DNA of 63,991 nt from Pocillopora damicornis (taxonomy: Eukaryota). Below, one piece after another: positions 8,506 to 58,000 of the stretch. Each line of letters opens with the position of its first letter. The first letter of the stretch is position 1. The stretch lies in NCBI RefSeq assembly GCF_003704095.1, contig NW_020844672.1, positions 682,010 through 746,000 of the forward strand. The letters run 5' to 3'. The notes under the pieces are model-generated. The model did no database searches and was not told the DNA's origin. It was given only the letters and a program-made list of their open reading frames with translations. The position numbers and the translations under genes were made by a program.

Positions 8506-9480
8506 ATGGCTAATTCCTCACAAATGTTTTCCAAAACTCTTTCTGCGACAAGCGAATATAACATCTCGTGTTCCTTGGATATTTCTTTTTTCGTTTTCGC
8601 TCGCCAGAACTCATCGTTTGCCTACATCTTTTTAGCTATGGGCAGCATAATATGTTCAGTAACAGCTCTTGTCGGTAACACAATCGTTATACTCGCTCTT
8701 TGGCGCAGTAAATCGATGCACTCCGCTACAAAGGCACTGTTCTACAGTCTTGCCATCTCCGATCTCGCGACAGGACTGACTCAGCCCTTATTTGTTGCAT
8801 ATCTGTTGGGTGCCGCTTGGGACAACGCATGGCTTTACTGTACCGTGGGTTTACCGTTCAGTCTGACGACTACTTTCTTTAGTATGGTGTCTCTATGGAC
8901 GCTGAGCATTATCGCTGTGGATAGATATCTCGCTCTTCATCTCCTCACGAGATACAAGACAGTGGTTACTGTCAAACTTATTGTTCTTGCTTTAGTTTTG
9001 GGCTGGCTCATCAGTGCCTTTTGTACGGTCTCTGTAATTTTTACTGTTAAATTTAGACAGATAGTCAGTGATGTTGTGGTTTTTATCTGTATTGTCATTT
9101 CCCTGTATTTTTACGGAAGGAACTACCTAACTTTACGACAGCAAAAACTTCATGTACAAGCACTGCGCTCGTTTCAAATGGAACATTATCGCAAATCTCT
9201 AAATAGCATGTTTCTGATATTCTGTTTATTTTTGCTAACTTATGTTCCTATAATCTCTATCTTCGTTTTTGTTATAATCGAAGGTTTTGGTAGCACATCG
9301 CTTTTTATAGTAGATATATTGACATTGATCGTTATAGCGAATTCATCGATAAACCCTGTTGTGTATTGCATGCGAGTTCGAGATCTGAAGGTAGAGGCAA
9401 TACGTGTCATCCAAAGCATTTTCTTATGTTGGCCAGTTATTTGGTTTAAAAAGAAAAAGGTGGCTCCTCTTCCAGCATAA
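8506..9480 (+). CDS. Intronless class A (rhodopsin-like) orphan GPCR, 324 aa, melanocortin/adenosine-receptor-like cnidarian-type expansion (copy C, intact)
   Basis: Seven hydrophobic segments, N-terminal N-glycosylation sequons (NSS, NIS), TM1 GNTIV, TM2 SLAISDL, TM3 AVDRY, TM4 W, TM7 NSSINPVVY and a very short ECL2. Confidence 0.93.
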   Translation: MANSSQMFSKTLSATSEYNISCSLDISFFVFARQNSSFAYIFLAMGSIICSVTALVGNTIVILALWRSKSMHSATKALFYSLAISDLATGLTQPLFVAYLLGAAWDNAWLYCTVGLPFSLTTTFFSMVSLWTLSIIAVDRYLALHLLTRYKTVVTVKLIVLALVLGWLISAFCTVSVIFTVKFRQIVSDVVVFICIVISLYFYGRNYLTLRQQKLHVQALRSFQMEHYRKSLNSMFLIFCLFLLTYVPIISIFVFVIIEGFGSTSLFIVDILTLIVIANSSINPVVYCMRVRDLKVEAIRVIQSIFLCWPVIWFKKKKVAPLPA

Positions 9481-38639: not shown

Positions 38640-41090
38640 TGCAAATGAGCTATAACTTTATCGGATGGAGAAATCAGTCGTTGAAACCTAACTTATAGCC
38701 AACTGTCAGACTTTCCATCTTCTAATTTACTGCTTCAATGATTCCTTCATTCATAATTCAAATTGACAGTTTGAAAGAGGCCTGTCATCTGGACAAAGAG
38801 CTTTTATCATTTAGGAGATAGGAAAAAATTCCAGACAAAGGCTTCTTGAGCGCAGTTCCACACACACGCACTCCAAGTTTTGTTTTTAACCATCTCATTA
38901 AGTTTTGCAAAATCATTTCTAAAACTCAAAAAACGCCTCTTATACATTTCAAATCTTCTTCCAACTAACCTTGTTACGACGTGTGGGAAAGAAGTTTACA
39001 AGAATTGATGAGTTCATCAAGTTCCTGTTTGTCTAATGACGTAAATCCGTAGAAAGTGTTTCCGAGAGTTCTTTTGTCATGGATATCCAAGAATTCTTTT
39101 GTTATATATATCAGAAAATTACAATTTTGTCATTAGCAGCAAAGTAGATGGCGTGTTCGAGAACGTTTTAACATAATGGTCTCGATCAGCCATCTATTAT
39201 ACTTTTACCCTGTTTGTTGCTTTTATCTAAATACATGCAGNNNNNNNNNNNNNNNNNNNNNNNNNNNNNNNNNNNNNNNNNNNNNNNNNNNNNNNNNNNN
39301 NNNNNNNNNNNNNNNNNNNNNNNNNNNNNNNNNNNNNNNNNNNNNNNNNNNNNNNNNNNNNNNNNNNNNNNNNNNNNNNNNNNNNNNNNNNNNNNNNNNN
39401 NNNNNNNNNNNNNNNNNNNNNNNNNNNNNNNNNNNNNNNNNNNNNNNNNNNNNNNNNNNNNNNNNNNNNNNNNNNNNNNNNNNNNNNNNNNNNNNNNNNN
39501 NNNNNNNNNNNNNNNNNNNNNNNNNNNNNNNNNNNNNNNNNNNNNNNNNNNNNNNNNNNNNNNNNNNNNNNNNNNNNNNNNNNNNNNNNNNNNNNNNNNN
39601 NNNNNNNNNNNNNNNNNNNNNNNNNNNNNNNNNNNNNNNNNNNNNNNNNNNNNNNNNNNNNNNNNNNNNNNNNNNNNNNNNNNNNNNNNNNNNNNNNNNN
39701 NNAACAAAAGTCAGTTAACGTTACAGTTTCCAGAATTAGAAAGAGATAGTAGAAAACTTAATCCTTAATGTGCACATTACTACTTAGTTGATTTCTGATA
39801 TGTAGAAATAAAGCACTGCAAGCGTGTTAAGGGCTTAGATGTTTTGCTTCCAATTGTTCTTGTTAAAACATCACATTCCACACAACACCTCAGCTGGAGA
39901 ACAAATTCTAGCCTCGAGCGAACCTATTTGGTCCATTTTTAGTAACACGATTGTCAATTGTGTGCTAACCCAACCGTTTAAACACTAGACCAAAATTAAT
40001 GAGATTGGCTTGAATAAGTGCTGTAAGATTTTCAAAGAGAACTATTGAAAGCCAATATGTTCTTCTGGATAATTTGTCTCAGGCCAAGTCCCAGAATGAT
40101 CCAAACAAATACACACATCTCTGATATTCAAACAGACAACAAAGAGCGTCTATTTCGGTAAACCATTTCAGTTCATTGAAAAAAATGACCCCTCAGTCAG
40201 AAAGTAAGTGAAACGTGGTAATTCCCTTATCCCTGTATACTCCGATAAGATAATCTACATGTAGACGTCTCCAAAATGTTTTACTTTGTGTAGATTCACG
40301 CAGAATATAGGATATGGCTTTCACACTCCGGCATATTGCCAACGGAGGCCAATCCTCAACAGGCCTGTTGATGTTGACAGTTTGAAAGAGGCCTTTCATC
40401 TGGAAAAAGCGCTTTTATCCTTTAACAGGCAGGAAATAATCCAGACCAAGGCTTCTAAAGCACAGTTCCACGCACACGCATTCCAGTTTTGCTTTTAACC
40501 ATCTCCTAAAGTTTTACTTAATCATTTCTAAAACTCAAAAACGCTTCTGAGAAAGAAGTTTGCGAGTCATCTGGACAAAGCGCTTTTATCCTTTATCAAG
40601 CAGGAAGCAATTAGGACGGCAACGCCAAGGAGAAAATGAAAGCATATTTTTCAGTTGGAANNNNNNNNNNNNNNNNNNNNNNNNNNNNNNNNNNNNNNNN
40701 NNNNNNNNNNNNNNNNNNNNNNNNNNNNNNNNNNNNNNNNNNNNNNNNNNNNNNNNNNNNAGTTGGAAGAAGATTTGAAATCGATAAGAGGCGTTTTTTG
40801 AGTTTTAGAAATGATTTAGCAAAACTTAACGAGATGGTTAAAAATAAAACTTGGAATGCGTGTGTGTGGAACTGCGCTTGAGAAGCCTTTGTCTGGAAAT
40901 TTTTCCTATCTCCTAAAGGATAAAAGCGCTTTGTCCAGATGACAGGCCTCTTTCATACTGTCAATTTGAATTATGAATGAAGGAATCATTGAAGCAGTAA
41001 ATTAGAAGATGGAAAGTCTGACAGTTGGCTATAAGTTAAGTTTCAACGACTGATTTACTCACCATCCGATAAAGTTATAGCCCATTTGAT
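38640..41090. repeat. Inverted repeat pair (38640-38966 and 40761-41090) made of the decarboxylase-array upstream module
   Basis: 40761-41090 is the reverse complement of 38640-38966 (e.g. ATCGGATGGAG...CTTATAGCCAACTGTCAGACTTTCCATC). Confidence 0.85.
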
Positions 41091-42017
41091 GCGGTCGTTT
41101 TGGCCGGTGCGAGTTTGAAATTGGTAATAGTGTAGCCCTCGAGACCAAAGTTTAGAGATCTGCTTGAAGAGATTCCTCTAACAATGGACTGTGTATAATG
41201 GAGGTATATGTGTTTATCTGTAGTTCTTTATTAGTCTAGTTACGATTTTTTTTCTCATGAAGCGTAAGAGTCAAGAATTACTCTTCAGCTTAGTGAAGAG
41301 ATTTCACGACGCTGCAGTTATATCACCTTTTTGTTAATGAAATACAATTTCCTTCGGCCATCTATAATTTAAAAATTTTTCGTCCGCGAAAGTTTGACAG
41401 TAAAATAATGGATGACAAATTAACATGTCTATTTATAGCCACGCAGTTACAAAGAAAATACATGAAGCTCTAGCTGACAACCGGACATGAAATGTAAGGC
41501 ATTAAGAATCAAGTGCAGAGTGTTCTCCTTTAATTTCATGCAAAACTATTAAAAAAAATTTTCAGTAAAGATCAGCTGGGAATACAAATTTGCTAGCTTT
41601 TCCCCGACTATTTAAAAGGTGCTTTGCTTTTAATTTGCCATGTTTAATGTTTCTCTAAATATAGAATTTTACGCTTTCATTTTTAACACAAGTCTTTTAG
41701 TTAATTTATGTTAAAAAGAAAGGAGCAACTTCATGTACCCGCCGCTTTGATGTTGGTTTTACATATTCAATGTGCCTCTCCCTAAAGGCATTGATTAAAC
41801 CATCTCAATTTTTTTACTTTCATTTTTTTAATCTAGGGTTTATTTTCATAGCAAAGTAGAACAAAAGAGTATGCTTGCAGAGATCTTTTTACTTTCAATT
41901 TTCAGTTTGTTCGAGAAGTAGAAACATGATGCACACTGTTTGACGTGAGGGAGAATAATTTCCGCGGCGCATTTATTTGCTTAAAATGCCACCCATGGCC
42001 ACCCTAACCAACTGAAC

Positions 42018-42146
42018 AGCCATCAATAACGCTAAATTATCTTTGGATTTACTTTTGACTTCTGTGATCAAGTTGTCTAACCATTTGTCAAGAACTTTCT
42101 GGTCAGAAGGAATCCATTGACCAACACGGTAAGGTTTGGAGCTCAT
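42018..42146 (-). pseudogene. 5' fragment of a PsiD-like decarboxylase (copy 1, truncated after ~43 codons)
   Basis: MSSKPYRVGQWIPSDQKVLDKWLDNLITEVKSKSKDNLALLMA followed by unrelated sequence. The full upstream module is retained. Confidence 0.88.
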
Positions 42147-43202
42147 GATTATGTTGCACGAAGTTTGCGACTCGTTTTGCTCGTAAATGATATACTCTTG
42201 TCGAATGTGTCTGCTTTTAACTGCAATATCGATGTCATTGCGCAAGCGCAACTGACGCTGGAATGCGTGTGCGTGCAACTGTGCTTAAGAAGCCTTTGTC
42301 TGGAATTTTTTCCTCCGTGATAAAGGATAAAAGCGCTTTGTTCAGATGACAAGCCTCTTTCATACTGTCAACGTCAGCAAGTAATTAAGTGTTGGACTCT
42401 GTTGGCAATATCCCAGAGTCTGAAAGCCATATCCTATGTTCCGCGTGAACTAAACAAAGTAAAACATTTTGACGACGTGCAGATTATCTAAACTGAGTAT
42501 ACAGGAATAAGGGAATTATCGCGTCTCACTTACTTTCTGAGGGATCATTTTTTGTTAAACTTTAGATTACAATGAACTGAAGTAGTTCACCTAAATAGAC
42601 CCTCTTTGTTGTCTGTATGAATATCAGAGATGTATGTCTTTGTTTGGATCATTGTGGGATTTGGCCGAGGTCAAAATATCCCGAGCAAGAACATTTTGGC
42701 TTTCAATAGTCCTCCAGTAGTCTGTGGATCATAACATGAATGTCAACCTAATTTAAAGATCACATTCAAAATATGTTGAGGGAACAAGATACAGTTAATT
42801 CCTAACCAAACGCAATATAAATGAGAGTTGTATCACATCTTAGAATGAGTATACTCATTCCAATTCTTGAAACTATAACGTTTATGACGCTTGTTTCACT
42901 CCTGTTTTACCACACTAGCTATGATTGAGAATCAGAGCGGTGAAATATCGAAATATTATTTTCAAACGTGCCTTCCAACAACATCAAATTCCAAACAACG
43001 CCTTCTCACGAAGAAAAAAAGGTTAGTTCTTTGCGCACGTGATAAGGTTATTTTCATTCCAAGCATCGTCAATCAATGTCAGTTTAGACAAGTATAAGAT
43101 AAAACCATCGTTGATAAAGGCAAATAATTTTTTCCACAAGTAGGCAAAATTCCGAAACGGTCACAATTACCTTCCAACAGTTATCCCACATTAACTTAGT
43201 GA

Positions 43203-43341
43203 TTTAGCATCATCAGTTGAGTTGATAACGTAAATTTGCCACCTTAAAGAGTTTAAACGCTTTTGAACTCTTTAGGATGGCTTATTTACGTTATCAACTC
43301 AGTTGATAATACTAAATTACCCTGTTATAATCTACCACTGA

Positions 43342-43378
<37 letters not shown>
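43203..43378. mobile_element. Palindromic retroelement-end relic (Penelope-like inverted pseudo-LTR type); second copy at ~61662-61810
   Basis: Long hairpin TTTAGCATCATCAGTTGAGTTGATAACGTAAAT...ATTTACGTTATCAACTCAGTTGATAATACTAAA followed by CACTGACGCAGCACCACAGTTTCTTTAGAAAC. The family assignment is from recall. Confidence 0.5.
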
Positions 43379-43576
43379 ATGCATTAACTCAGGTTAGGTT
43401 CGCTTTTCTACAAAAAATCGATCAATAAACGAGTTAACTCCATTGAATATCCAGACGTTTTGTATAGAATGCGACCATCTTATCAAATAACGTTTGTTTT
43501 AAATCAATTTTCAATCGAAAACGACAAAATTCAAATGTCGGTTATAAAGCCTTAAAACTAAGAGACAACAACGCTT

Positions 43577-43788
43577 TTAACCCTTTAACTCCCGTGAGTG
43601 ACCAGGGCAGAACTTCTCCTTACTATATCTATACAATATCATGCAGACAAGTAGTGAGAATAAAGAAGAATTTCAAATATGGGATTACTAATTAATCTAA
43701 TACCAAAGTCTCCAAACCAACATGATGAGAATCGTTTAGCAGGCAGTAAGGAGAATTACTAATGAGATCGTGGGATTTAAAGGGTTAA
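43577..43788. mobile_element. piggyBac-type MITE (~210 bp)
   Basis: TTAA|CCCTTTAACTCCC ... GGGATTTAAAGGG|TTAA, i.e. TTAA target duplication plus TIRs. Paralogs lie at ~44061-44270, 60190-60480, 60754-60964 and 61154-61420. Confidence 0.85.
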
Positions 43789-44060
43789 ACTCACATGAGA
43801 AAGAAGGGGCGGGAAAAGTTATACGCACGCAAAGCACATAATCATTTAACTTGTGACGCGTAAATGGTAGCTACACCTTCATCCTCCCCTCCCCTCCTGG
43901 ATTGTGATAGTATGTTTCTTTAAGTTCCCAGATAATTTTTAAAGCACATTCAAGTCATGCGTTACCTTCAGGTCGTGGATATTGCAACAAACTAATCTCC
44001 TGTGACTTTCACGGTTTAGGTCAATGTAATCTTGTAAAGCTGAATTTTCTTAATTTTGTT

Positions 44061-44270
44061 TGACCCTTTTCCTCCCATGAGTGACCAATAAAGAAATTTG
44101 TCCTCACAATATTTTGACAATATCAAGCCTAGAAGTCATTGGAATAACGAAAAATATCAGTAAGGGTATTATTAGTTGTTCTATTACTAAATTCTTCAAA
44201 TTGACGTCATAATAATTGTATGACAGGAAGTAAGGGGAAAATTAATGAGATCTTGGAGTTGAAGGGTTTT
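44061..44270. mobile_element. Second, more diverged copy of the same piggyBac-type MITE
   Basis: GACCCTTTTCCTCCCATGAGTGACC ... ATGAGATCTTGGAGTTGAAGGGTT, colinear with 43577-43788. Confidence 0.75.
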
Positions 44271-45846
44271 AGATTTTCAGTTTAAGAATTCTGCGGACAA
44301 GCTACAGCCAGCTAAGTACTCAATTGTAATACTATATTTTAGTGGTTCGTTTACCTGCGCAAAATTCCATGTATCTTTTGTCTGCCCATTTATTCAATTA
44401 TCTGTATGTTAATCCAGCCATTCACGCCTTCATCCTCCATCCATCCGTCCGTTCTGCCGTCCTTAAACCAGTCTATCCCTTCGCCTCTCCATCAGTCCAT
44501 CTGTCTTTATTTCGCGTGTCTGTCTGTCTGTCTTTCCGGTTGATCTTTCCTTCCCTTCAGTAACTTGAGATCTTCCGTCGGCTGGCTGACCGATTTGTTT
44601 TTCAGTGGTGACTAAGCGACTTCTTCAGTCTCCTCACAGGCGTAGAAAACCTTATCCTCATGTAAGCCTATAGTTTCCTAAATATGCCGGAGCAATATTG
44701 GTGCACTATTGTTAGTTACGTTCAGGTACGTTCAGGTTACTCAGGTTCTCATCTTGTCGAATGCGCAGGAAAGAAAAGGATAGGGCTAAGTAACGGCAAT
44801 ATCCAACTGGTAAGGAAGAGTTCAGGAATTTGAAAACTGGCGCCTCTTTTAGAAGTACAGCTCATCGTTACGCAAGCTCTTTTGAAGTACCAAAAACTCA
44901 GAACCTCTCAAAAATGTGTCAGATTTTCTCTGTATGAAGGACTGGAGTTTCTTCTTCTTCGAAGGCTGCATATTTTTATAGTCAGTCTTATTATGCTCGA
45001 TACAAATCAGGTTACTAAAACTGGTCGAATTGAATGCGGTTCTCTTTAAAGATACTAAGCCTATCATGATGACTTATTAATTTCATTCAGCAGAACTTGT
45101 GAGGCTTGACTTACCACAACGCAGTGTGTTGGTCATCTTGAAAATCTCTTAGAAAGCTAAAGCTGAAATTCCCGCCTTGAGTCCAAAGAGGGTTTCTCTG
45201 TAATATCGAAATATATATGTGTATATCAAAGAATACCTTAAAAATCCTACAGCACTTATTCAAGCCAATTTTGGTCTAGTGTTTATACGATTGGGTTAGC
45301 ACACAATTGACAATTGTGTTACTAAAAATGAACCAAACAGGTTCGCTCGAGACTAGAATTTGTTCTCCCGGTGAAGTGTTGTTTGCAATATGATGTTTTA
45401 ACAAGAACAGTTGAAAGCAAAATATCTAAGCCCTTTACACTCTTTCAGTGCTTTATTTCTACACATCAGAAACCAACTAAGTGGTAATGTGCACATCGAG
45501 GATTAAGTTTGCTATTATCGCAATTTCGGTAAACCCTGGGAAGATCTTTCACTCCAAATGTGAGTTAAGACACTTTTGGTTTGTAACTATTATTAAAAAT
45601 CCCATCGCAGATGCTAAAATAAGCGATTAAATGCTTTGGTTTGAAAATACACCATCAATTATCAGACATGCTCGTGGCACAAAAAGATTTGCTTGAAAAA
45701 CTTGCAAATATCGATGGCTAAAACCTTGAACAAAATCTCCCGTTGAAGGCTCTAAGCAAAGACAAGCGCAAACACGACCAGCGATGACAATTATCGTACA
45801 ACAGGCCTATTACAACGATCGAGGACAAACTACTCAAAAGGTAAAA

Positions 45847-46345
45847 CAACCTGTTGATTTGTCGTTGAGGAAAGCAGCAAATCCAGCAGTCGTAGCCATC
45901 AGCCAGTTCAGGATTACATTGATGGGGAGACCAACCCAGCCAGTTTTGTTGTACTCTGGAGTTTTTTCATGATGTGGTCTATTAAAATAATCATCAGTTG
46001 TCAGAAAGAGATACTTGCCCCTTTCGAAATACCTGGAAGTTTGTACTGTTGCCAGAACATCTGATGGAAAAACATGTTGATCTCGGGGTCGGAGATGATA
46101 GCTTTCAATAATTCTTGAATGGGTGGATGGAGAACGAGGTCTTCCTTTGTACCATAAGCAACTATCGGCGGAGTTTCATCACTAGCTGTTTCTTCATCTC
46201 CAGCTGGTGGATAAAGAGCCATTAATAACGCTAACGTATTTCTGTATTTAATTTGGACTTCTATGATCAAGTTGGTAAATCATTTGTCAAGAAATTTGTG
46301 ATCAGAAGGAATCCATTGACCAACACGGTAAGGTTTGGAGCTTAT
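45847..46345 (-). pseudogene. PsiD-like decarboxylase pseudogene (copy 2)
   Basis: Start codon ATG>ATA at 46345, TGG>TGA at 46280-46282 and indels near 46000. The gene is fused at ~45846 to the 3' flank of the intact copy, losing the catalytic two-thirds. Confidence 0.9.
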
Positions 46346-46591
46346 GATTATGTAGCATGTAGTTCGCGGCTTGTTTTGCTCCTAAATGATATAATCCTTT
46401 TGAATGGTCTGCTTTTAACTGTAATATCGATTTCATCGCGCAAGCGCAAATGACGCTGAAATGCGTGTGCCTGATAAAGGATAAAAGCGTTTTGTCTAGA
46501 TGACAGGAATTAGTTGTATCTTCCAGCTTGATAAAGGATAAAAGCGCTTTGTCCAGATGACTCGTAAACTTCTTTCTCACAAGCGTTTTCT

Positions 46592-46695
46592 GAGTTTTAG
46601 AAATGATTTAGCAATCCAAGCAAGTTTTAGAAATGATTTAGCAATCCAAGTAAGTTTTAGAAATGATTTAGCAATCCAAGCAAGTTTTAGAAATG
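46592..46695 (+). repeat. 30-bp tandem repeat (AAGTTTTAGAAATGATTTAGCAATCCAAGC) x ~3.5
   Basis: Directly visible with no unique spacers. Confidence 0.95.
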
Positions 46696-48671
46696 TTATG
46701 CTCACACGTTATAACAAGGTTAGTTGAAAGAAAATCTGAAATGGTAAAGAAGCGTTTTTTGAATTTTAGAAATGATTTAGCAAAACTTAAGGAGATGGTT
46801 AAAAGCAAAACTTGGAATGCGTGTGCGTGTGCGTGTAACTGCGCTTGAGAAGCCTTTGTCTGGAAATTATTCCTGCCTAATAAAGGATAAAAAAGCTTTA
46901 TCCAGAGAACAGGCCTCTTTCATACCGTGACCATCAACAGGTTGTTGAGGATTGGCCTCCCTCGGCAATGTGCGGGAGTGTGAAAGCCATATCCTATGTT
47001 CCGCTTGAACTAAACAAACTAAAACATTTTGGAGACGTCTACATGCAGATTATCTTATCGGAGTATACAGGAATAAGGGAATTACCGTGTTTCACTCACT
47101 CTCTGAGGGATCATTTTCACTTGAACTGTAGATTACGATAAACTGAAGCGGTTCACCGAAATAGACACTCTTTGTTGTCTGTCTAACTTTGATTGAGAAT
47201 CAGCGATGAAATATCGAAATGCTATTTTCAAACATTCCTGCTAACAACATCACATTCCAAACAATGCCTTCTCACGAAGAAAAAAAGCTTAGTTCTTAGT
47301 GCACCTGATAAGGTTATTTTCAATCCAAGCATCGTCAATGTCAGTTTAGACAAGTATAAGATATTNNNNNNNNNNNNNNNNNNNNNNNNNNNNNNNNNNN
47401 NNNNNNNNNNNNNNNNNNNNNNNNNNNNNNNNNNNNNNNNNNNNNNNNNNNNNNNNNNNNNNNNNGGCAACGCCAAGGAGAAAATGAAAGCATATTTTTC
47501 AGTTGGAATTTCGCGAATGACTGGATCTGTTTATAATCTCCTACGGCGCCACAAGTTAACCTCAGCATAATGTTAAGAGCAGCATTGAGTTCCAAATTGA
47601 AACTTAAATAATCTGCCGTCGGGGTTTCCTTTCTCGGACCACGCGAATTTTGATGATTTCACGTTATTTTGCAAAGGATGGCTAAGCTATTGTTCTGCNN
47701 NNNNNNNNTGTTGCTTTTCCACGTCCTCGTTGCTGTCGCAATCGTGGTTTGCTAAAGGTATTTATTGACGTGTTGTTTGAACTGTTGGATTTTCAGAAAA
47801 AAAAAGGCTTTGATATACTTGCGTAGGCGCATGNNNNNNNNNNNNNNNNNNNNNNNNNNNNNNNNNNNNNNNNNNNNNNNNNNNNNNNNNNNNNNNNNNN
47901 NNNNNNNNNNNNNNNNNNNNNNNNNNNNNNNNNNNNNNNNNNNNNNNNNNNNNNNNNNNNNNNNNNNNNNNNNNNTTTTATTCTTCGTGTGAAGGCGTTG
48001 TTTGGATTGTGATGTTGTCAGCAGGAAGGATTAAAAAGAATATTTCAATATTTCACCACAGTGATTCTCAATCTAACCTAATGTAGTAAAACTAAAGTCA
48101 GTTAAATAAACATCATTAACGTTACAGTTTCCAGAATTAAAAAGAGACACTCATCTTTGTTAGACAAACAGACAACAAAGAGTGTCTATTTCGGTGAACA
48201 ACTTCAGTTCATTGTAATCTAAAGTCACGNNNNNNNNNNNNNNNNNNNNNNNNNNNNNNNNNNNNNNNNNNNNNNNNNNNNNNNNNNNNNNNNNNNNNNN
48301 NNNNNNNNNNNNNNNNNNNNNNNNNNNNNNNNNNNNNNNNNNNNNNNNNNNNNNNNNNNNNNNNNNNNNNNNNNNNNNNNNNNNNNNNNNNNNNNNNNNN
48401 NNNNNNNNNNNNNNNNNNNNNNNNNNNNNNNNNNNACCTGTTGATGGTCACGGTATGAAAGATGCCTGTCATCTGAACAAAGCGCTTTTATCCTTTATTA
48501 GGCAGGAACAATTTCCAGACAAAGGATTCTCAAGCAGAGTTGCACGCACACGCATTCCAGTGTCAGTTGCGCTTGCGCAATCAAATCGATATTGCAGTTA
48601 AAAGCAGACACATTCAACAGGTGTATACCATTTACGAGCAAAACGAGCCGCGANNNNNNNNNNACATAATC

Positions 48672-49563
48672 ATGAGCTCCAAACCTTATCGTGTAGGTCA
48701 ATGGATTCCTTCTGACCAGAAAGTTATTGACAAATGGTTAGCCAACCTGATCACAGAAGTCAAAAGCAAATCCAAAGATAAGTTAGCGTTATTGATGGCT
48801 CTTCATCCACCGGCTGAAGATNNNNNNNNNNNNNNNNNNNNNNNNNNNNTAACAGTTGCTGACGGTACAGAGGAAGACCTCGGTCTCCATCCGCCTGTTC
48901 AAAAATTATTAAAAGCTATCACCTCCGACCCCGAGATAAACATGTTCTTCCATCAGATGTTCTGGCAACAGTACAAGAATCCAGATAGTTCGAAAGGGAC
49001 AAGGATCCCTTGCTGGCAACTGATGATNNNNNNNNNNNACTACATCATGACAACAGCTCCAGAGTACAACGAAACTGGTTTGGTTGGCTTCCCCATCAAT
49101 GCAATCCTGAACTGGCCGATGGCTACGACTGCTGGATTTGCTGCTTTCCTCAANNNNNNNNNNAACAGGTTGTTCAAAAAAATTCTTAAGCATTGGGGAA
49201 AGTTTCTTTCCANNNNNNNNNNTTGTTACGTGTTGAATGAAGAGCCTCGTCATGGGTGGTTTGGTGAACACGCAATGCAAGCAATGCCAAANNNNNNNNN
49301 NGAGTTCAAATGCAAGCCTTATGAAAAACATCACGGTTTTACTTCATGGGATGATTTCTTCACCAGAGAGTTTCGTGATGGCATTCGNNNNNNNNNNTCT
49401 CCGGACGACGATTCCATTGTTGCGAATGCTTGTGAATCGGCGCCATACCAAATCTCTGCCGCCGTGAAAAACAGGGACATCTTCTGGATAAAGCACCAAC
49501 GGTACTCAGTGGACTTTATCCTGAACATGAGTGACCTTGCCAAGCGATTTCATGGTGGAACCG
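48672..49563 (+). CDS. PsiD-like pyruvoyl-dependent decarboxylase (copy 3; partial, 3' end in an assembly gap)
   Basis: Open frame from MSSKPYRVGQWIPSD through LVGFPINAILNWPMATTAG, GFTSWDDFFTREFRDG and NACESAPY to RFHGGT, then N-gap 49564-49663. Several short internal N runs preserve the frame. Confidence 0.82.
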
Positions 49564-50908: not shown

Positions 50909-51656
50909 ATGAGCTCCAAACCTTACCGTATTGGTCAATGGATTCCTTCTGACCAGAAAGTTCTTGACAAATGGTTAGACAACTTGATCACAGAAGTCAA
51001 AAGTAAATCCAAAGATAGGTTAGCGTTATTGATGGCTCTTCATCCGCCGGCTGAAGATGAAGAGACGGCTAAAGGTGGAAATCAGCTAGCAGTTGCTCAC
51101 GGTACAGAGGAAGATCTCAGTCTCCATCCACCGGTTCAAGAATTATTGAAAGCTATCATCTCCGACCCCGAGATAAACATGTTTTTCCATCAGATGTTCT
51201 GGCAACAGTACAAGAATCCAGATAGTTCGATAGGAACAAGGATCCCTTGCTGGCAACTGATGATTATTTTAATCGACTTCATCATGACCACAGCTCCAGT
51301 GTACAACAAAACTGGTTTGGTTGGCTTCCCCATCAACGTAATCCTAAACTGGCCGATGGCTACGACTGCTTTCCTCAACGACAAAGTCAACAGGTTGTTC
51401 AAAAGTATTCTCAACTATTGGGGAAAGTTTCTTTCCAGTTCTGCTTCTTGTTACGTGTTGACTGATGATCCTCGTCATGGTTGGTTTGGTGAAGACGCAA
51501 TGCAAGCCATGCCAAACTTCGTCCAAGAGTTCAAATGCAAGCCCAACGAAAAACATTATGGTTTTACATCATGGGATGATTTCTTCACCAGAGAGTTTCG
51601 TAATGGCATTCGTCCAGTAGCATCTCCGGACGACGATTCCATTGTTGCGAATGCTT
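50909..51656 (+). CDS. PsiD-like pyruvoyl-dependent decarboxylase (copy 4; partial, runs into a gap, 4-aa in-frame deletion)
   Basis: Open frame MSSKPYRIGQWIPSD...GFTSWDDFFTREFRNGIRPVASPDDDSIVANA, then N-gap 51657-51756. MATTAFLND lacks the 12 nt present in the other copies. Confidence 0.8.
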
Positions 51657-52271
51657 NNNNNNNNNNNNNNNNNNNNNNNNNNNNNNNNNNNNNNNNNNNN
51701 NNNNNNNNNNNNNNNNNNNNNNNNNNNNNNNNNNNNNNNNNNNNNNNNNNNNNNNNCCATTTATTCAATCATCTGTACGTTAATCACGGCTTCATTCCTC
51801 AATCCATCCGTCCGTTCTGCCGTCCTTAAGCGAGTCTATCCCTTCGTCTCTCCATCAGTCTATCTGTCTTTATTTCGCGTGTCTGTCTGCCTGTCTGTCT
51901 TTCTGATTGGTCTTTTCTTCCCTTCAGTAGCTTGAGATCTTCCGTCGGCAGGCTGACCGATTTGTTTTTGGTGGTGACTAAGCGACTACTTCATTCGCCG
52001 TACAGGCGTAGAAAAACCTCATCCTCATGTAAGCCTATAGTTTCCTTCGAAATGTCGGAGCAAATATCGGTGCACCATTGTCAATTACGTTCGGGTTCGT
52101 TCAGCTTAGTTTTGTCATCTCGTCGAATGCGCGGGAAAGACAAGGAATGGGCTAAGCAACGAAATACCCGCCGGATAAGAAGGAGTTCAGGAATTTGAAA
52201 ACTGGTACCTCTTTTAGGAGTACAGCTGATTGTAATGGAAGCTCCTTTGAATACACTCTTGCAGTACTTTT

Positions 52272-52960
52272 GTTCGCTAGGTGAGGTGTTGTGTTGTGTG
52301 GAATGTGATATTTTTAACGAGAGAAGTTGAAAGAAAAACATCCAAGCCCTTAAGAGTCTTGCAGTGCTTTATTTCTACATATCAGAAATCAACTAAGTAG
52401 CAATGTGCACATCGAAGATTGATGCATCGAGAATGAATGCCTTAAAAATCCTAATTACTTTTGGCCTAGAATTCAAACTGTTGGATTAGAGCACAATTGA
52501 CAATTGTGTTATTAACAATGGACCAAACAGTTTCGGTCGAGGCTAGAAGTTTTTCTCTAGGTGAGGTGCTGTGTTGTGTGGAATGTGATATTTTTAACAG
52601 GAAAAGTTGAAAGGAAAACATCTAAGCCCTTCAGCAGCGCTTTATTTCTGCATATCAGAAATCAACTAAGTAGTCATGTACACATCGAAGATTTATGCAT
52701 CGAGAATGAATGCCTTTAAAATTCTAATTACTTTTGGCTCAGTATTCAAACGGTTGAATTAGCACACAATTGACAATTGTGTGATTAAAAATGGACCAAA
52801 CAGTTTCGGTCGAGGCTAGAATTTTTTCTCTAGGTGAGGTGTTGTGTTGTGTGGAATGTGATATTTTTAACAAGAAAAGTTGAAAGAAAACATCTAAGCC
52901 CTGCAGCAGTGCTTTATATCTACCTATCAGAAATCAACTAAGTAGTAACGTGCACATTGA
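52272..52960 (+). repeat. ~275-bp tandem repeat, ~2.5 copies
   Basis: CTAGGTGAGGTG(T/C)TGTGTTGTGTGGAATGTGATATTTTTAAC recurs at ~52277, 52557 and 52829. The paralogous block at ~45240-45500 has a single copy. Confidence 0.9.
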
Positions 52961-53582
52961 GGATTAAGTTTTCTATTATTGCACTTTCGGTAAACCATGG
53001 GAATATATTTCAATCCAAATGTGAGTTAAGAAACTTTTGGTTAGTAATTATTATTAAAAATCCCATGGCAAATGCTAGAATAAGTGATTAAATGCTCCGG
53101 TTTGAAAATACACCATCAATTATTAGACATGCTCCTGGCACAAATAGATATGCTTGGAAAACTTGCAAACTTCGATGGGGTCGAGGGCTCTAAGCAAGGA
53201 CAAGCGCAAACACGGCCAGCGATGACAATTATCGTACAACAAGCCTATTACAACGGTCGAGGACCAACTACTCAAAAGGTAAAAATAAATGTGTGGTCTT
53301 GCAGCACATAACAAACCAAGGCTCACATAAGACTCTCATAAGGATTGCAAAATAATTTAACAGGCCTAAACAATTCACAAACACTAGGCCAGAACATTCC
53401 TAACTTTAGTAGTTGCCGATCATTCTAAATTTAGTAGTTCATACGATTGACGAGGTGAAAATGAAAAAAACTAAATTTCCCTATCATCAAAAGACATCTA
53501 AGAGGAAAGAAAGAAAATTATCATGTTCATGCCGAACTCTGTCAAAATCAAGCTGTTTATCAAAATCCATATTTATATTTGC

Positions 53583-54938
53583 TTAGGTTGATGGATGTAC
53601 GGTCGCAATTTTCGATTTAACATGAATATTTTCGGTATGCAGACCTGGCGTTTGACCTCTCGTATCGAACTCAATATTAACTCCAGGGCGAAATATCAGT
53701 AGATGGGTGGACCCACCATAGTGAAACATGCCAAGCTGGTCACCTTTCTTCACTTTATCCTTTTCTTCAATCGTGATTTCGTTGGAGGACACCTCTGACA
53801 TACCGAGCGATACGAAGCACATCAAGCCAATGTGGGGATTATCAGCTTGAATGTAGATAATACCTCTGGCAGCTACTTGGGCTAGGTATCCTTGTGACAT
53901 GCATATGTTGGCCGATGCGGGGCTATCCTGAATGTCGTGGGTTGCAGAATAATAAGAACCATCCACGAGTTCTGTCTTGTAAATGGTGCCCGACACAGGA
54001 CTGTGCCATCGGTGATAACTGGTGGCACTTAGGTACGCTTGGTAGACGGTTCCACCATGAAATTGCTTGGCAAGGTTACTCATGTTCAGGATGAAGTCCA
54101 ATGAGTACCGTTGGTGCTTTGCCCAGAAGAAGTCCCTCTTTTTCACGGCTGTAGAGATCTGGTATGGTGCTGACTCACAGGCATTCGCAACAATGGAATC
54201 GTCTTCCGGAGATGCTACTGGACGAATGCCATCACGAAACTCTCTGGTGAAGAAGTCATCCCATGATGTAAAACCATAATGTTTTTCATTAGGCTTGCAT
54301 TTGAACTCTTGGACGAAGTTTGGCATTGTTTGCATTGCGTCTTCACCAAACCAACCATGACGAGGATCATCAGTCAACACGTGACAAGAAGCAGAACTGG
54401 AAAGAAACTTTCCCCAGTAGTTGAGAATACTTTTGAACAACCTGTTGACTTTGTCGTTGAGGAAAGCAGAAAATCCAGCAGTCGTAGCCATCGGCCAGTT
54501 CAGGATTACATTGATGGGGAGACCAACCAAACTGGTTTTGTTGTACTCTGGAGCTGTTGTCATGATGTAGTCGATTAAAATAATCATCAGTTGCCAACAA
54601 GGGATCCTTGTTCTTTTCGAACCGTCTGGATTCTTGTACTGTTGCCAGAACATCTGATGGAAGAACATATTGATCTCGGGATCGGAGATGATAGCTTTCA
54701 ATAATTCTTGAACAGGTGGATGGAGACCGAGGTCTTCTTCTGTACCGTGAGCAACTATCGGCGGAGTTTCACCATCAGCTGTTTCTTCATCTTCAGCCGG
54801 TGGATGAAGAGCCATCAATAACGCTAACTTATCTTTGTATTTAATTTGGACCTCTGTGATGAAGTTGGCTAACCATTTGTCAGGAAATTTGAGGTCAGAA
54901 GGAATCCATTGACCAACACGGTAAGGTCTGAAGCTCAT
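53583..54938 (-). CDS. psiD-like: Complete intronless PsiD-like / phosphatidylserine-decarboxylase-family pyruvoyl-dependent decarboxylase proenzyme, 451 aa (copy 5; L-tryptophan decarboxylase-like)
   Basis: ATG at 54938 in ATAATCATG context, shared by the paralogs. PSDC-type N-domain: GQWIPSD, LVGLPINVILNWPMATTAG, GWF. Catalytic domain: GFTSWDDFFTREFRDGIRPV, NACESAPY, GGTVYQAYLSATSYHRWHSPVSG, SQGYL, ADNPHIGL, GMSEVSS, VKKGDQLGMFHYGGSTH. The autocleavage Ser is predicted at residue 410. Confidence 0.93.
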   Translation of the reverse strand: MSFRPYRVGQWIPSDLKFPDKWLANFITEVQIKYKDKLALLMALHPPAEDEETADGETPPIVAHGTEEDLGLHPPVQELLKAIISDPEINMFFHQMFWQQYKNPDGSKRTRIPCWQLMIILIDYIMTTAPEYNKTSLVGLPINVILNWPMATTAGFSAFLNDKVNRLFKSILNYWGKFLSSSASCHVLTDDPRHGWFGEDAMQTMPNFVQEFKCKPNEKHYGFTSWDDFFTREFRDGIRPVASPEDDSIVANACESAPYQISTAVKKRDFFWAKHQRYSLDFILNMSNLAKQFHGGTVYQAYLSATSYHRWHSPVSGTIYKTELVDGSYYSATHDIQDSPASANICMSQGYLAQVAARGIIYIQADNPHIGLMCFVSLGMSEVSSNEITIEEKDKVKKGDQLGMFHYGGSTHLLIFRPGVNIEFDTRGQTPGLHTENIHVKSKIATVHPST

Positions 54939-55099
54939 GATTATGTTGCATGTAGTTCGCGGCTTGTTTTGCTCGTAAATGATATACTCCTGTAGAGTGT
55001 GTCTGCTTTTAACTGCAATACAGATTTCATTGCGCAAACGCAAATGACGCTAAAATACGTGTGCGTGCAACTGTTGCTTGAGAAACGTTTGTCTGGAAA

Positions 55100-58000
55100 T
55101 TTTTCCTGCCTGATAAAGAAGAAAAGTGTTCTGTCTAGATGAGAGGAACTAATTGTATCTTCCTGCCTGATAAAGGATAAAAGCGCTTTGTCCGGATGAC
55201 AGGCCTCTTTCATACCGTGACCATCAACAGGTTGTTAGAGAAACACGAACTAATTAATTCGTAGCAAAACGCAATTTAAATGAGATTTCTATCAAAATCT
55301 TAGAATGAGTAAACTTATTCCAATTCTTTAAACTGTAACGTTAATGACGCTTGTTTAACTGACTCCTGTTTTACCACATTAACTTTGATTGAGAATCAGA
55401 TCGGTGAAATATGGAAATATTATTTTCAAACATTCCTGCTAACAGAATCACAGCCTAAACAACGCCTTCACACGAAGGAAAAAAAGCTTAGTTCTTAATA
55501 CACCTGATGAGGTTATTTTCATTCCTTGCATCTTCAATCAATGCCAGTTTAGACAAGTGTAAGATATTACATGCGTGTATGTTAGTATATCAAGGCCCTT
55601 TTGCTTCTGCAGACCCAATAGTTCAAACAACACGTCAATTTTGCGTAGACTGGACGAACTGATCGAAATTCGGAGGTATCCTCCGAGCAGTTAATTAGTC
55701 AAAATATTTCTTAGCGAAGTCAGGAATCAAACTTACCTTACAATCGGCATGGAGACCTGCATGTATTTAGATGAAAGTAACAAAAAGAGTAGAAGAATAC
55801 TCGATGGCGGTTCGAGACCATTATGTAAAAAATGTTCTCAAACACGCTATCTATTATACTACTAACCACAAAATGGTAATTATTTGATGATGTAAATATA
55901 ATAAAACAATACTTGCATATCCATGACAAAAGAACTCTCGGAAACAATTTCCACGGATTTACGTTATCAGAGAAACACGGACTTGATGACTGATCAGTTC
56001 TCGTAAACTTCTCTCTCACATTACACTAAAATGAGTGTGCCTGATAAAGGATAAAAGCTTTTTGTCTAGACGACAGGAATTAATTGTATCTTCCTGCTTG
56101 ATAAAGGATAAAAGTGCTTTGTCCAGATGACTCATAAACTTCTTTCTCACAAGTGTTTTTTGAGTTTTAGAAATGATTTAGCAAAACTTAAGGAGACGAT
56201 TAAAAACAAAATTTGGAATGCGTGTGCGTGGAACTGCGCTTGAGAAGCCTTTTTCTGGAAATTGGTCTTGTCTCATACAGGATAAAAGCGCTTTGTCCAG
56301 ATGACAGGCCTCTTTGAAACTATCAACGTTAACGGGTTGTTAAGGATTGGCAACCGTTGGCAATATGCCGGAGTGTGAAAGGCATTATCCTATGTCCCGC
56401 GTGAACTAAACAAAGTCATACATTTTGGAGACGTTTACATGCAGATTTTCTTATCGAAGTATACAGGAATAATGGAATAACTGTGTTTTACTTACTTTCC
56501 GACTGAGGGGTCATTTTATCTTGAGCTTTAGATTACAATGAACTGAAATGATTCCCCGTAATAGACGCTCTTTGTTGTCTGTTTAAATATCATTGTGGGA
56601 TTTGGCTTAAGACAAATTATCCCGCGGAAGAACATTTTGGCTTTTAATAGTCCTCCAGTAGTTCGTGGATCATAACATAAATATCAACCTGATTTAAAGA
56701 TCACATTCAAAAGATGTTGATAGAGTAAGATACAATTAATTCGTAGCCAAACGCAATTTAAATGAGAGTTCTATCAAATCTTAGAACGAGTAAACTTATT
56801 CCAATTCTTGAAACTCTAACGTTTATTGCGCTTGTTTAACTGACTCCTGTTTTACCACATTGACTTTGATTGAGAATCAGAGCGGTGAAATATCGAAATA
56901 TTGTATTCAACATTCCTGCTAACAACATCACAGTCCAAACAACGCTTTCACACGAAGAAAAAAAGCTTAATTCTTAGTGCACCTGATAAGGTTATTTCCA
57001 TTCCAAGCGTCGTCAATCAATGTCAGTTAGAAAAGTATAAGATATTACATGCACGTACGTTAGTATCTCAGAGCCTTTTTGTTTCTGCAAACCCAACAGT
57101 TCAAATATCACGTATACACTGCGTAGACATTGACATGCAGCGCTTTTTCTTGATAGGATTGCTTACGTAATGGTCCAAGGTAGTGTTTTTCTCTATTGAT
57201 AATCTCAGCACTTGAAAGGTAATTGGAGCAAAACGTGAGTCATTATTGAGTAAGTGGCACCACTCGTACAACTGCATGCTGTATGAATGCCAGCACAATC
57301 GCGTTCGTGCCAGAGGAAGATCCCGAAGGCACGCACATTGATCATTCTTACTCATACTTTTTCTGTACGTGAGCCAAAACGTCTGCTGGTACCCAAGGTT
57401 GAAAAAGCCAGGTCAAGTCAGTCTTGACTACGAGTTTGTTATTTCACTTTATTATTTTTTGTAACTTGATAGTCCATTATGTAAAGTTTTTTTAGTCTTT
57501 TGCTACCGAGGGAATATAAAATAATTAGCATACTATCGCATTTCATTTCGTGAGATGGTTGATTATACACATTATACGCATGGGACCAGGGAGAGTAAGA
57601 TTTCAGGGGGAGGTGTAGGTTTCGTTCGATTCTCGTATTTCGTGTACGTGACATGNNNNNNNNNNNNNNNNNNNNNNNNNNNNNNNNNNNNNNNNNNNNN
57701 NNNNNNNNNNNNNNNNNNNNNNNNNNNNNNNNNNNNNNNNNNNNNNNNNNNNNNNTGCAGTTTAAATGAGAGTATTATCAAATATTAGAATGAGTAGACT
57801 TATTCCAATTCTTGAAACTGTAACGTTTATGACGCTTGTTTAACTGACTCCTGTTTTACCATATTAGCTTTAATTGAGAATCAGAGTGGTGAAATATCGA
57901 GATATTCTTTTCAAACATTCCTGCTAACAGCATCACATTCCAAACAATGCCTTCATATGAACAAAAAAAAACTTAGCTCTTAATGCACCTGATAAGTTTA

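Follow-up and report, generated by a model that had tools for sequence, protein, structure and literature searches.

An intronless open reading frame (ORF) of bacterial type in the genome of the coral Pocillopora damicornis raises the question of whether the gene is a contaminant, a recent acquisition by horizontal gene transfer (HGT) or an old constituent of the host genome. The ORF lies within a 63,991 bp stretch of contig NW_020844672.1 (assembly GCF_003704095.1, positions 682,010–746,000), which is referred to here as the window and provides all coordinates (Table 1). An initial annotation, made from the sequence alone, had proposed a horizontally transferred gene of a bacterial or fungal type that is integrated into host DNA. 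The cnidarian gene is ancient and is neither contamination nor a recent transfer. The reading considered probable here is that of an ancient bacterial-type gene that entered animals horizontally, was inherited vertically within Cnidaria and encodes a genuine coral PsiD-like decarboxylase.

Table 1. Features of the gene, its array and its surroundings in the window
Feature	Positions	Strand	Details
PsiD-like pyruvoyl-decarboxylase proenzyme gene	53583–54938	minus	451 aa; intact, intronless (ORF list, self-tblastn, Pfam, PDB)
PSDC N-terminal domain (PF12588)	54324–54722	minus	residues 73–205; Pfam E 5.6e-40
PS_Dcarbxylase domain (PF02666)	53664–54260	minus	residues 227–425; Pfam E 2.8e-35
GGST motif, G408-G409-S410-T411	53706–53717	minus	aligned with the ends of the solved PsiD beta chains
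Partial paralogue	50909–51655	plus	residues 1–253, 87% aa identity; ended by an N run at 51657
Partial paralogue	48672–49562	plus	residues 1–297, 77% identity; riddled with N runs
Pseudogene fragment	45843–46345	minus	residues 1–168; frame change, two in-frame TGA
Short 5' fragment of a further copy	42012–42146	minus	residues 1–45
Dispersed host repeat, ~265 bp	53180–53443		5'-truncated copy of a longer element; ~140 bp past the stop codon, same gap-free contig
Second dispersed host repeat, ~490 bp	57159–57650		5' side of the gene, ~2.2 kb off, same gap-free contig
High-copy 204-bp MITE	43581–43784		termini CCCTTTAA...TTAAAGGG; TTAA at 43577–43580 and 43785–43788
Reference MITE of the initial annotation, abundant	21360–21541		TTAA/CCCTTTA-type terminus
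Rhodopsin-family GPCR ORF, 324 aa	8506–9480	plus	Pfam 7tm_1
Rhodopsin-family GPCR ORF	4161–4967	plus	Pfam 7tm_1
Rhodopsin-family GPCR ORF	2414–2992	minus	Pfam 7tm_1

Domains, cleavage motif and active site

The ORF is uninterrupted on the minus strand from the ATG at 54938 to the stop codon at 53583–53585, as given by the ORF list and by self-tblastn. The eukaryotic start context that had been claimed for it is borne out by the sequence at the ATG, which reads ATAATCATG. Both domains of the product score well above their Pfam gathering cut-offs, with 137.1 bits against 23.4 for PSDC over the full profile length (1–138) and 122.2 bits against 22 for PS_Dcarbxylase. The best solved relative of the 451-aa protein is PsiD, a fungal L-tryptophan decarboxylase (PDB 8zia and 8x4q, E 1.5e-61, residues 69–409). 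This sequence match settles the fold. By homology, the proenzyme is predicted to cleave itself between G409 and S410 into a beta chain of 409 aa and an alpha chain of 42 aa, the latter starting with the pyruvoyl group that S410 would become. The solved PsiD beta chains terminate exactly opposite G409 in the PDB alignment, and G408, G409 and S410 are invariant in an alignment (A1) of 15 coral, sponge, bacterial and unnamed sequences. PsiD self-cleaves at a GGSS motif, uses the catalytic triad E242-H296-S403 and anchors its pyruvoyl group with L290 and F398 (PMC11929908). The coral counterparts are E255, H309 and S410 for the triad and L303 and F405 for the anchoring residues, all invariant across the same 15 sequences. 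On the basis of both domains, the cleavage motif and the triad, the coral protein is assigned to the PsiD-like, or PSDC-containing, pyruvoyl decarboxylase family.

The likeness to PsiD of Psilocybe cubensis extends to the two-domain PSDC and PS_Dcarbxylase architecture, the GGS(S/T) motif at an equal position, the Glu-His-Ser triad and the residues by which the pyruvoyl methyl is held (coral L303, F405 and H309). The two differ in that the HMMER alignment of PsiD to the coral protein reaches only 211 bits and that the coral gene resides in an animal genome, outside any psilocybin-type cluster. They also differ in the pocket, for which residues were taken from the PsiD-tryptamine structure (PMC11929908) and mapped through the coral-PsiD PDB alignment. 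Seven of the ten indole-pocket residues are replaced (PsiD to coral: L112 to V138, P114 to L140, Y117 to N143, F289 to Y302, V292 to A305, Y338 to I345 and L339 to C346), several of them non-conservatively (those at Y117, Y338, L339 and P114), whereas M373 is kept and T374 and I376 undergo conservative changes, to S381 and V383. An identity as PsiD in the strict, tryptophan-specific sense was rejected on these replacements, and tryptophan specificity is therefore not to be assumed for the coral enzyme.

A canonical phosphatidylserine decarboxylase (PSD) was likewise rejected, since the NCBIfam equivalog cut-offs are missed: the best model, NF001941, gives 101 bits against a required 371, and five other PSD/ASD models also score far under their cut-offs. 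The coral protein has the superfamily, the pyruvoyl chemistry and the PS_Dcarbxylase domain in common with canonical enzymes such as E. coli Psd and mitochondrial PISD, and the canonical structures 7cnw and 6l06 match it at E ~4e-10. Canonical PSD enzymes are without a PSDC domain and are cleaved at LGST.

Distribution, bacterial affinity and origin

Orthologues with 56–77% identity to the coral protein are found in Montipora, Porites, Oculina, Acropora, Desmophyllum and Dendronephthya, and one with 48% identity in Clytia. All fall in one clade, and the grouping of Scleractinia, Dendronephthya and Clytia has 100/100 support. This clade spans Scleractinia, Octocorallia and Hydrozoa, so descent within Cnidaria is vertical. 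The octocoral orthologue from Dendronephthya (P0071) is composed of four coding exons, with three introns in the coding sequence (CDS). Named animal matches, as read from three lists of the top 120 matches, are confined to Scleractinia, Octocorallia, Clytia, two demosponges and one crinoid; it is in these lists only that Bilateria (the crinoid apart), Nematostella, Hydra, ctenophores and placozoans lack named matches. Orthologues spread across Metazoa in congruence with the species tree had been named as a sign of vertical descent, and such a distribution was found in part, for sponges and cnidarians alone. The crinoid copy, from Anneissia, is coral-like and nests inside Scleractinia in the trees; comparison of its flank with the coral genome gave only matches of 36–100 bp, which are uninformative. 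Since the family is also present in demosponges and, as a coral-like copy, in a crinoid, the proposed alien index excluding only Cnidaria would miss the gene. A gene ancestral to animals would also account for the occurrence of the family in two early-branching phyla.

The nearest relatives outside Cnidaria are demosponge genes and a shallow bacterial clade of many phyla. Bacterial relatives are encoded in 572 of the 600 bacterial stretches scanned, and the best 80 of these 572 represent at least 14 phyla, with 49–55% identity over residues 5–447 where full length. A bacterial gene context was confirmed for two of the relatives (P0112 and P0117). These PSDC-containing proteins, named 'phosphatidylserine decarboxylase family protein' in Desulfovibrio, Bacteroidales, Pedobacter, Paraburkholderia and Caulobacter, are collinear with the coral protein and have an N-terminal PYxVGxW motif and the catalytic columns in common with it. 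Unlike the coral array, the bacterial genes are single and lie within ordinary bacterial neighbourhoods. No functional characterisation of bacterial PSDC-domain proteins was found in the literature. The label of a 'bacterial/fungal-type family' thus holds for its bacterial half, while the homologue of the named agaricomycete Mycena is far more distant at ~40% identity. A Trichoglossum match listed as fungal (51% identity) was discarded as a sign of fungal affinity, as it nests among Alphaproteobacteria.

The trees were built by quick searches, and a UFBoot run of 290 iterations is perhaps not fully converged. Under LG+F+G4 and rooted on Mycena, all animal sequences fall within a bacterial grade (split 95.1/85), which is the nesting that had been proposed as a tree test, but the outgroup shifts under a mixture model. 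With the site-heterogeneous model, the tree that joins the outgroups to the cnidarian stem lies 10.7 log-likelihood units above the quick free tree (p-AU 0.7). A tree of 86 sequences also puts the outgroups with the cnidarian stem, and Cnidaria are there not nested within the sampled bacteria. Neither placement of the animals is rejected by the AU test, and the trees are compatible with one early-animal acquisition as well as with several. No specific bacterial sister lineage of the cnidarian clade appears in the sampled trees, and therefore no donor can be named.

The most likely history is that a bacterial-type gene entered animals by horizontal transfer before the split of Anthozoa and Medusozoa, possibly a single time, in an early animal from which both sponges and cnidarians descend. 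Thereafter it would have passed down vertically within Cnidaria, with duplication in corals, a gain of introns in octocorals and a shift to a host-like composition. The HGT of the initial annotation is accordingly plausible in its bacterial affinity, but as an ancient rather than a recent event. We infer both the direction and the number of transfers into animals.

Several bacterial-to-animal transfers, into the cnidarian stem, into demosponges (one or more) and into the crinoid (separately, and possibly from a coral), form a tentative alternative to which we give appreciable, though clearly lesser, weight. Sponge proteins are 62–64% identical to bacterial ones, which almost equals the 66–72% among sponges, whereas they are only 50–54% identical to the coral protein. 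The mixture-model topology of best likelihood parts Cnidaria from sponges and bacteria, and the Anneissia copy lies inside Scleractinia. In addition, three PSD genes of the sponge Amphimedon queenslandica were independently proposed by Conaco et al. 2016 as prokaryote-derived HGTs (PMC4784904). The identity pattern could nevertheless result from a slower rate in sponges, and the analyses do not reject the topology that places all animals together on one side.

It is unlikely that the family instead goes back to an early animal or opisthokont ancestor and survived in sponges and cnidarians while other lineages lost it, with the bacterial clade produced by inter-bacterial spread that was possibly seeded by a eukaryote. 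In two analyses a branch does separate all animal and eukaryote-context sequences from the rest (98 SH-aLRT; 95.1/85), and the paraphyly of sponges to Cnidaria is compatible with the species tree. The family occurs in fungi too, and within the bacterial clade the internal branches are short and the phyla mixed. However, Mycena (40%) and PsiD (211 bits) resemble the coral protein much less than bacteria do (50–55%), the family is very widespread in bacteria and patchy in eukaryotes, and fungal rooting sets the animals inside the bacteria and not beside the fungi.

A recent transfer specific to P. damicornis or to reef corals, which was implicit in the initial annotation and would suit an intronless gene in a lineage-specific array, is extremely improbable given the single clade of stony coral, octocoral and Clytia orthologues, the introns of the octocoral gene and a host-like composition (GC3 of 0.47, compared with 0.40–0.44 in the GPCR ORFs of the window and a median of 0.67 in the bacterial PSDC genes).

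Gene array, host repeats and expression

The ORF belongs to a local array of several copies, part of which has decayed. As had been described, its flanks occur in duplicate; a further four copies or fragments are located at 42–52 kb. A second intact copy is located on C3784, within 13.6 kb that contain no N and no other long ORFs. Relative to the intact copy, dN/dS is 0.30 for the paralogue at 50909–51655 and ranges from 0.30 to 0.39 over the paralogues; purifying selection acts on the coral gene. The gap-free contig of the intact gene (51757–57655) encodes no other ORF of at least 100 aa, in agreement with the reported lack of an operon-like neighbourhood.

Each of the two dispersed repeats on this contig has at least 30 copies on other scaffolds. 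Those of the 53180–53443 repeat are 73–87% identical, with ten genomic copies aligned, and those of the 57159–57650 repeat are 73–90% identical, many of them occurring as inverted pairs. One gene copy had been said to be joined without gaps to MITE-bearing DNA at 41–47 kb. A textbook TTAA-flanked MITE (43581–43784) is indeed present there, inside a gap-free stretch (40761–47365) that also carries the two minus-strand gene fragments (45843–46345 and 42012–42146). This element has at least 30 copies among the matches listed, at 85–90% identity, and a 2.8-kb query containing it returned 5696 first-look candidates. Its supposed relation to the MITE at 21360–21541 extends to the TTAA/CCCTTTA-type terminus, i.e. 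to the class of element, but not to any internal similarity; a blastn search of 21360–21541 against the window gave zero matches at 41–57 kb, so that the terminal motif alone is in common.

The animal GPCRs noted on the same scaffold are present as three ORFs at 2.4–9.5 kb. The contig of the intact gene is joined to them only through several N runs, and co-location on the scaffold is therefore weaker evidence than first assumed. A Pfam search of the ten longest plus-strand ORFs at 10–35 kb, where the reported 32-exon animal gene was sought, gave no credible match.

In a polyA RNA run (X15), contigs extend over 53727–54908 with a word depth of 600–1200 and represent a ~92%-identical paralogue or allele. 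Near-exact RNA contigs span the CDS and the 3' UTR, and an RNA contig (53374–53670) bridges the end of the CDS and the adjoining repeat. The depth of X15 is zero upstream of the ATG, although DNA runs do cover the same flank. The polyA support suggested as a check on the gene was thus obtained for the CDS and not for the upstream flank, in the form of assembled metatranscriptome contigs, the most abundant of which come from a close paralogue or a related coral and not provably from the 53583–54938 copy. As an expression signal, these contigs indicate that the coral gene family is transcribed in the host.

Contamination or a chimeric assembly, with a bacterial or fungal ORF of the holobiont scaffolded into coral DNA, might be suspected because the contig of the intact gene is tied to the GPCR region by N runs alone and the array is gap-rich. 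This explanation is hardly credible, as the gap-free contig itself carries high-copy coral repeats at most 140 bp from the stop codon, a single RNA contig bridges the CDS end and a repeat, and neither this contig nor C3784 has bacterial genes as neighbours. The gene-flank junction (54935–55235) is moreover present without mismatch in two independent DNA studies, and the nearest bacterial protein among the matches listed is only 55% identical. The gap-free second copy, the polyA RNA run, the selection on the gene, its host-like GC3, the octocoral introns and homologues on record on coral contigs of 27–73 Mb all agree with the claim of integration. It is strongly supported that the coral gene is genuine and physically integrated in nuclear host DNA.

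Sponge relatives and a possible role in amine synthesis

The Amphimedon PSD genes probably belong to the same family as the coral gene. An Amphimedon UniRef entry (P0327) bears the name PsiD-like and has 54% identity to the coral protein. Two sponge relatives (P0102 and P0118) are, like the coral gene, intronless and are sited among retroelements, and Amphimedon resembles the coral in being an early-branching animal in which a gene of bacterial type has become fixed. Unlike the cnidarian genes, which form a separate long-stemmed clade, the sponge genes are much nearer to bacteria. The accessible text of PMC4784904 reads the Amphimedon PSDs as lipid-metabolism enzymes and does not report cnidarian relatives. 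The sponge genes are already published as transfer candidates, and the coral genes are named in RefSeq. The family is absent from the coral HGT list of Bhattacharya et al. 2016, and no cnidarian report was found in the literature on PsiD or PSD transfer in corals or cnidarians. Bacterial genes fixed in animal genomes are rare and each well-documented case is useful; the coral case is unusually old and its integration evidence is unusually clean.

Homology suggests that the pyruvoyl group would decarboxylate an amino-acid-type substrate to an amine independently of PLP, with tryptophan as one candidate only. Amphimedon is reported to be without AADC and to rely on symbionts for trace amines (PMC10570526). 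Trace amines elicit responses in non-bilaterian animals, and receptors for amines have been deorphanised in placozoans (bioRxiv 10.1101/2025.04.18.649542). In both works the PLP-dependent AADC is the sole synthetic enzyme considered (bioRxiv 10.1101/2025.04.18.649542; PMC10570526). A host-encoded pyruvoyl amino-acid decarboxylase in sponges and cnidarians, if true, would alter the accounting of trace amines. A more far-reaching proposal, which we regard as speculative and rather improbable, is that a single early-animal capture gave sponges and cnidarians a PLP-independent route from amino acid to trace amine (e.g. tryptamine). The highly expressed coral arrays would then feed amine signalling or an alkaloid-type defence, perhaps read by the aminergic-like GPCRs ~45 kb away. 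If so, non-bilaterian animals, Amphimedon included, would possess a second, overlooked enzymatic source of monoamines. The three GPCR ORFs match 7tm_1 with E values of 2e-21, 3e-19 and 4e-15, and among solved structures they come closest to adenosine, trace-amine, 5-HT and histamine receptors (E ~1e-15).

Gene structure, predicted product and local copies

The ORF under study is uninterrupted, and its ATG lies in the context ATAATCATG. The 451-residue protein contains a PSDC domain (PF12588, residues 73-205, E 5.6e-40) followed by a PS_Dcarbxylase domain (PF02666, residues 227-425, E 2.8e-35), both identified by Pfam. The NCBIfam models for canonical phosphatidylserine and archaetidylserine decarboxylases all scored far under their cut-offs (best 101 bits vs 371). 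The closest solved relatives are the Psilocybe L-tryptophan decarboxylase PsiD (8zia and 8x4q, E about 1.5e-61) and a 'PsiD-like' entry (9jer), and canonical PSD beta chains give a weaker match (E about 4e-10). In RefSeq, the proteins from corals, the octocoral and the crinoid go by 'L-tryptophan decarboxylase-like' (one is 'iboD'), and the Clytia and Amphimedon entries in UniProt are 'PsiD-like domain-containing'.

PsiD cleaves itself at G401-G402-S403-S404 and uses a Glu242-His296-Ser403 triad, with the pyruvoyl methyl group held by Leu290, His296 and Phe398 and the indole ring enclosed by ten residues (PMC11929908). In the PDB-hit alignment, the triad and anchoring residues correspond to coral E255, H309, S410, L303 and F405, which are invariant among the aligned coral, sponge, bacterial and unnamed members. 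Residue G409 faces the exact end of the solved PsiD beta chains and is followed by S410-T411; self-cleavage is predicted to release a 409-aa beta chain and a 42-aa alpha chain. The indole pocket, mapped through the same alignment, is less conserved between the two proteins than the catalytic residues. Replacements are found at L112 (coral V138), P114 (L140), Y117 (N143), F289 (Y302), V292 (A305), Y338 (I345) and L339 (C346), with conservative changes at T374 (S381) and I376 (V383), and M373 is kept as M380. Because of this divergence the tryptophan decarboxylase assignment was not adopted, and the protein is classified as a PsiD-like pyruvoyl decarboxylase with its chemistry presumed from homology.

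An N-terminal motif, PYxVGxW(L/I)PSD (residues 5-16), is conserved across bacterial, sponge and coral members, and its Trp11 is nearly invariant. PsiD inhibits itself by inserting the N-terminal Trp27 into its own pocket (PMC11929908), and by analogy it is conceivable that the coral motif serves as a similar autoinhibitory plug.

A tblastn comparison of the protein with the window identified four further copies or fragments, and the duplicated flanks described in the initial annotation are present in both direct and inverted orientation. The assembly comprises 234.35 Mb in 4393 contigs, with the window at C1307:682010-746000 of a 761,878-bp scaffold. It holds one additional intact copy, located at the extreme start of a 321-kb scaffold (C3784), and further fragments on C4203, a 6.6-kb scaffold with many N runs. 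The array probably continues over the ends of scaffolds, and the number of copies counted in the assembly is therefore a minimum.

Decarboxylase copies and associated features, in window positions unless a scaffold is named
Feature	Position	Strand	Remarks
Three rhodopsin-family GPCR ORFs	2414-9480		about 45 kb from the decarboxylase array
MITE	21360-21541		abundant (1769 candidates)
Gap-free contig	40761-47365
Short decarboxylase fragment	42012-42146	-
MITE	43581-43784		TTAA on either side; termini CCCTTTAA...TTAAAGGG; textbook form
Decarboxylase fragment	45843-46345	-	frame-shifted; 2 in-frame TGA
Decarboxylase copy	48672-49562	+	77% identity; many N runs
Decarboxylase copy	50909-51655	+	87% identity; interrupted by N run
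Gap-free contig	51757-57655
Dispersed host repeat	53180-53443		about 140 bp beyond stop codon; other scaffolds hold at least 30 copies, 73-87% identity
Intact decarboxylase ORF	53583-54938	-	ATG at 54938; 451 residues
N-terminal motif	54891-54926	-	residues 5-16
Second dispersed host element	57159-57650
Intact decarboxylase copy	C3784:800-2134		84% identity

Distribution of relatives

A word-based protein search returned hundreds of close relatives, with identities given here to the window protein. Scleractinian sequences (Montipora, Porites, Oculina, Acropora, Desmophyllum) show 59-77% identity, some of them on contigs of 27-73 Mb. The octocoral Dendronephthya follows at 56-64% and the hydrozoan Clytia hemisphaerica, reached by searching from a deeper member of the clade, at 48%. 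The crinoid Anneissia japonica carries a 75%-identical copy on a 2.3-Mb contig, and the demosponges Amphimedon queenslandica and Halichondria panicea show 50-54% (62-64% vs bacteria). Bacterial relatives from at least 14 phyla are 49-55% identical across residues 5-447. In bacteria, with each species represented by one genome, a scan gave 572 relatives among the first 600 pattern matches listed, and the gene surroundings were ordinary bacterial ones where inspected. Unnamed members of the sponge group have eukaryotic surroundings (LTR and RVT elements, a Pygopus-type PHD gene). All copies examined from scleractinians, the hydrozoan, the crinoid and sponges are intronless, whereas a Dendronephthya orthologue (P0071, L105:10001-15062) has four coding exons, its three introns interrupting the CDS near residues 90, 168 and 283. 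Dendronephthya gigantea encodes four paralogues on two contigs.

The Clytia orthologue (L106:397-13353, CACVBU010001054.1) has two sulfotransferase genes on one side and an EamA-type transporter gene on the other, and this locus could be a small metabolic cluster making and exporting a sulfated amine. The Anneissia copy (L094:10001-11353, VUNX01037216.1) falls inside the stony-coral clade with at most 85% identity to any coral sequence compared, and there are no NCBI-called genes within 10 kb on either side. It is possibly contamination by a hexacoral that has not been sampled, or the result of transfer from a cnidarian to an echinoderm. A 51%-identical protein from a Trichoglossum hirsutum MAG (P0125, KAI9866053.1) was rejected as a fungal relative, as every tree places it among Alphaproteobacteria (Xanthobacteraceae, Caulobacter); the probable explanation is a bacterial sequence inside a fungal bin, or else a separate recent transfer. 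The Marinifilaceae MAG 'MAG_Ocu_7' (L015), labelled as if from the holobiont of an Oculina coral, encodes a 53%-identical homologue that is no nearer to the coral genes than those of free-living bacteria, and was ruled out as donor.

Phylogeny and origin

A single clade of all cnidarian sequences plus the crinoid was recovered in every analysis. Its support is 100 in FastTree (287 rows), 97 and 100 in the quick IQ-TREE analyses under LG+C20 PMSF (86 and 57 rows respectively), and 100/100 under LG+F+G4 (57 rows), with a bootstrap of 290 iterations behind the last. Octocoral, hydrozoan-type and scleractinian sequences form distinct groups inside it, with the crinoid among the scleractinians. The sponge groups adjoin the bacterial clade. 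The attachment of distant sequences (Mycena, a Rhizobium/Flavobacterium-type subfamily and unnamed long branches) is unstable between trees. In the 57-row quick and LG+F+G4 trees they lie inside bacteria and all animal rows fall on one side of a branch (98 SH-aLRT; 95.1/85). When these two trees are rooted on the fungus, the animals lie within a bacterial grade with sponges paraphyletic to Cnidaria. In the 86-row tree the distant sequences join near the cnidarian stem. Under the mixture model the tree constrained to this attachment is 10.7 log-likelihood units above the quick free tree (p-AU 0.7), and neither arrangement is rejected. An alien index leaving out Cnidaria only, of the kind suggested in the initial annotation, would miss the coral gene because the scores of sponges and the crinoid equal or exceed those of bacteria.

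The affinity of the coral decarboxylase is bacterial and not fungal, given that the named agaricomycete homologue from Mycena reaches 40% identity. The spread of the gene is broad in bacteria and patchy in eukaryotes, which makes bacteria-to-animal transfer the more economical direction, and an ancient transfer of this kind, in one or more events, is the probable origin. Vertical descent without any transfer into animals is considered unlikely. The bacteria-to-animal transfer would be older than the anthozoan-medusozoan split and may also precede the divergence of sponges and cnidarians. Cnidarians have since simply inherited and duplicated the gene, with introns gained in octocorals. A recent transfer is hardly credible. 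Conaco et al. 2016 (PMC4784904) propose three Amphimedon 'PSD' genes as prokaryote-derived candidates, with a tree. The PsiD-like decarboxylase family is not among the 41 genes that Bhattacharya et al. 2016 list as coral HGTs, and our literature search found no paper on cnidarian PsiD-like genes.

Integration and expression in the coral genome

The decarboxylase is a resident, functional coral gene. Its gap-free contig carries both dispersed host elements, the nearer one being a 5'-truncated copy in an alignment with ten genomic copies. The initial annotation had noted a gap-free join to MITE-bearing DNA at 41-47 kb, and two decarboxylase fragments and the MITE do share one contig there. This MITE has at least 30 copies at 85-90% identity, and a 2.8-kb query including it returned 5696 first-look candidates. 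Its proposed kinship to the MITE at 21360-21541 extends to a common TTAA/CCCTTTA terminus, but the latter has no internal sequence in common with anything at 41-57 kb. The second intact copy lies in 13.6 kb without any N (GC 0.36-0.40), with no other ORFs of at least 110 aa within the 10 kb checked beyond it. No bacterial-like neighbourhood was seen around the intact gene, in agreement with the operon-free setting first described. The shared scaffold with animal GPCRs (ORFs at 2.4-9.5 kb, Pfam 7tm_1) is suggestive and not decisive, since the contig of the intact gene is linked to the remaining scaffold solely via N runs. Integration is nevertheless upheld by the host repeats, the MITE beside the fragments and the N-free second copy, and contamination is extremely improbable.

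Two RNA and two DNA runs from four studies were compared with the contig of the intact gene; all four consist of assembled contigs, which permit no reading of transcript ends or levels. Contigs of a polyA metatranscriptome (X15) cover 53727-54908 with a summed word depth of 600-1200 and are 7-9% different from the window, so that they derive from an allele, from a close paralogue or from another, related coral. Two near-exact RNA contigs were also found, one at 54038-54254 (2 differences) and one at 53374-53670 (1 difference) that spans the CDS end and the host repeat. The X15 depth is zero between 54909 and about 57000, a flank that both DNA runs do cover, and the signal is therefore RNA ending near the ATG. 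Paralogue dN/dS is 0.30-0.39 at dS about 0.2. The GC3 of the gene, 0.47, lies close to that of the neighbouring GPCR ORFs (0.40-0.44), and the median among 80 bacterial homologues is 0.67. The 324-aa GPCR ORF has adenosine A3, TAAR9, 5-HT1E and histamine H2 receptors as its best solved relatives (E about 1e-15, TM1-4 only).
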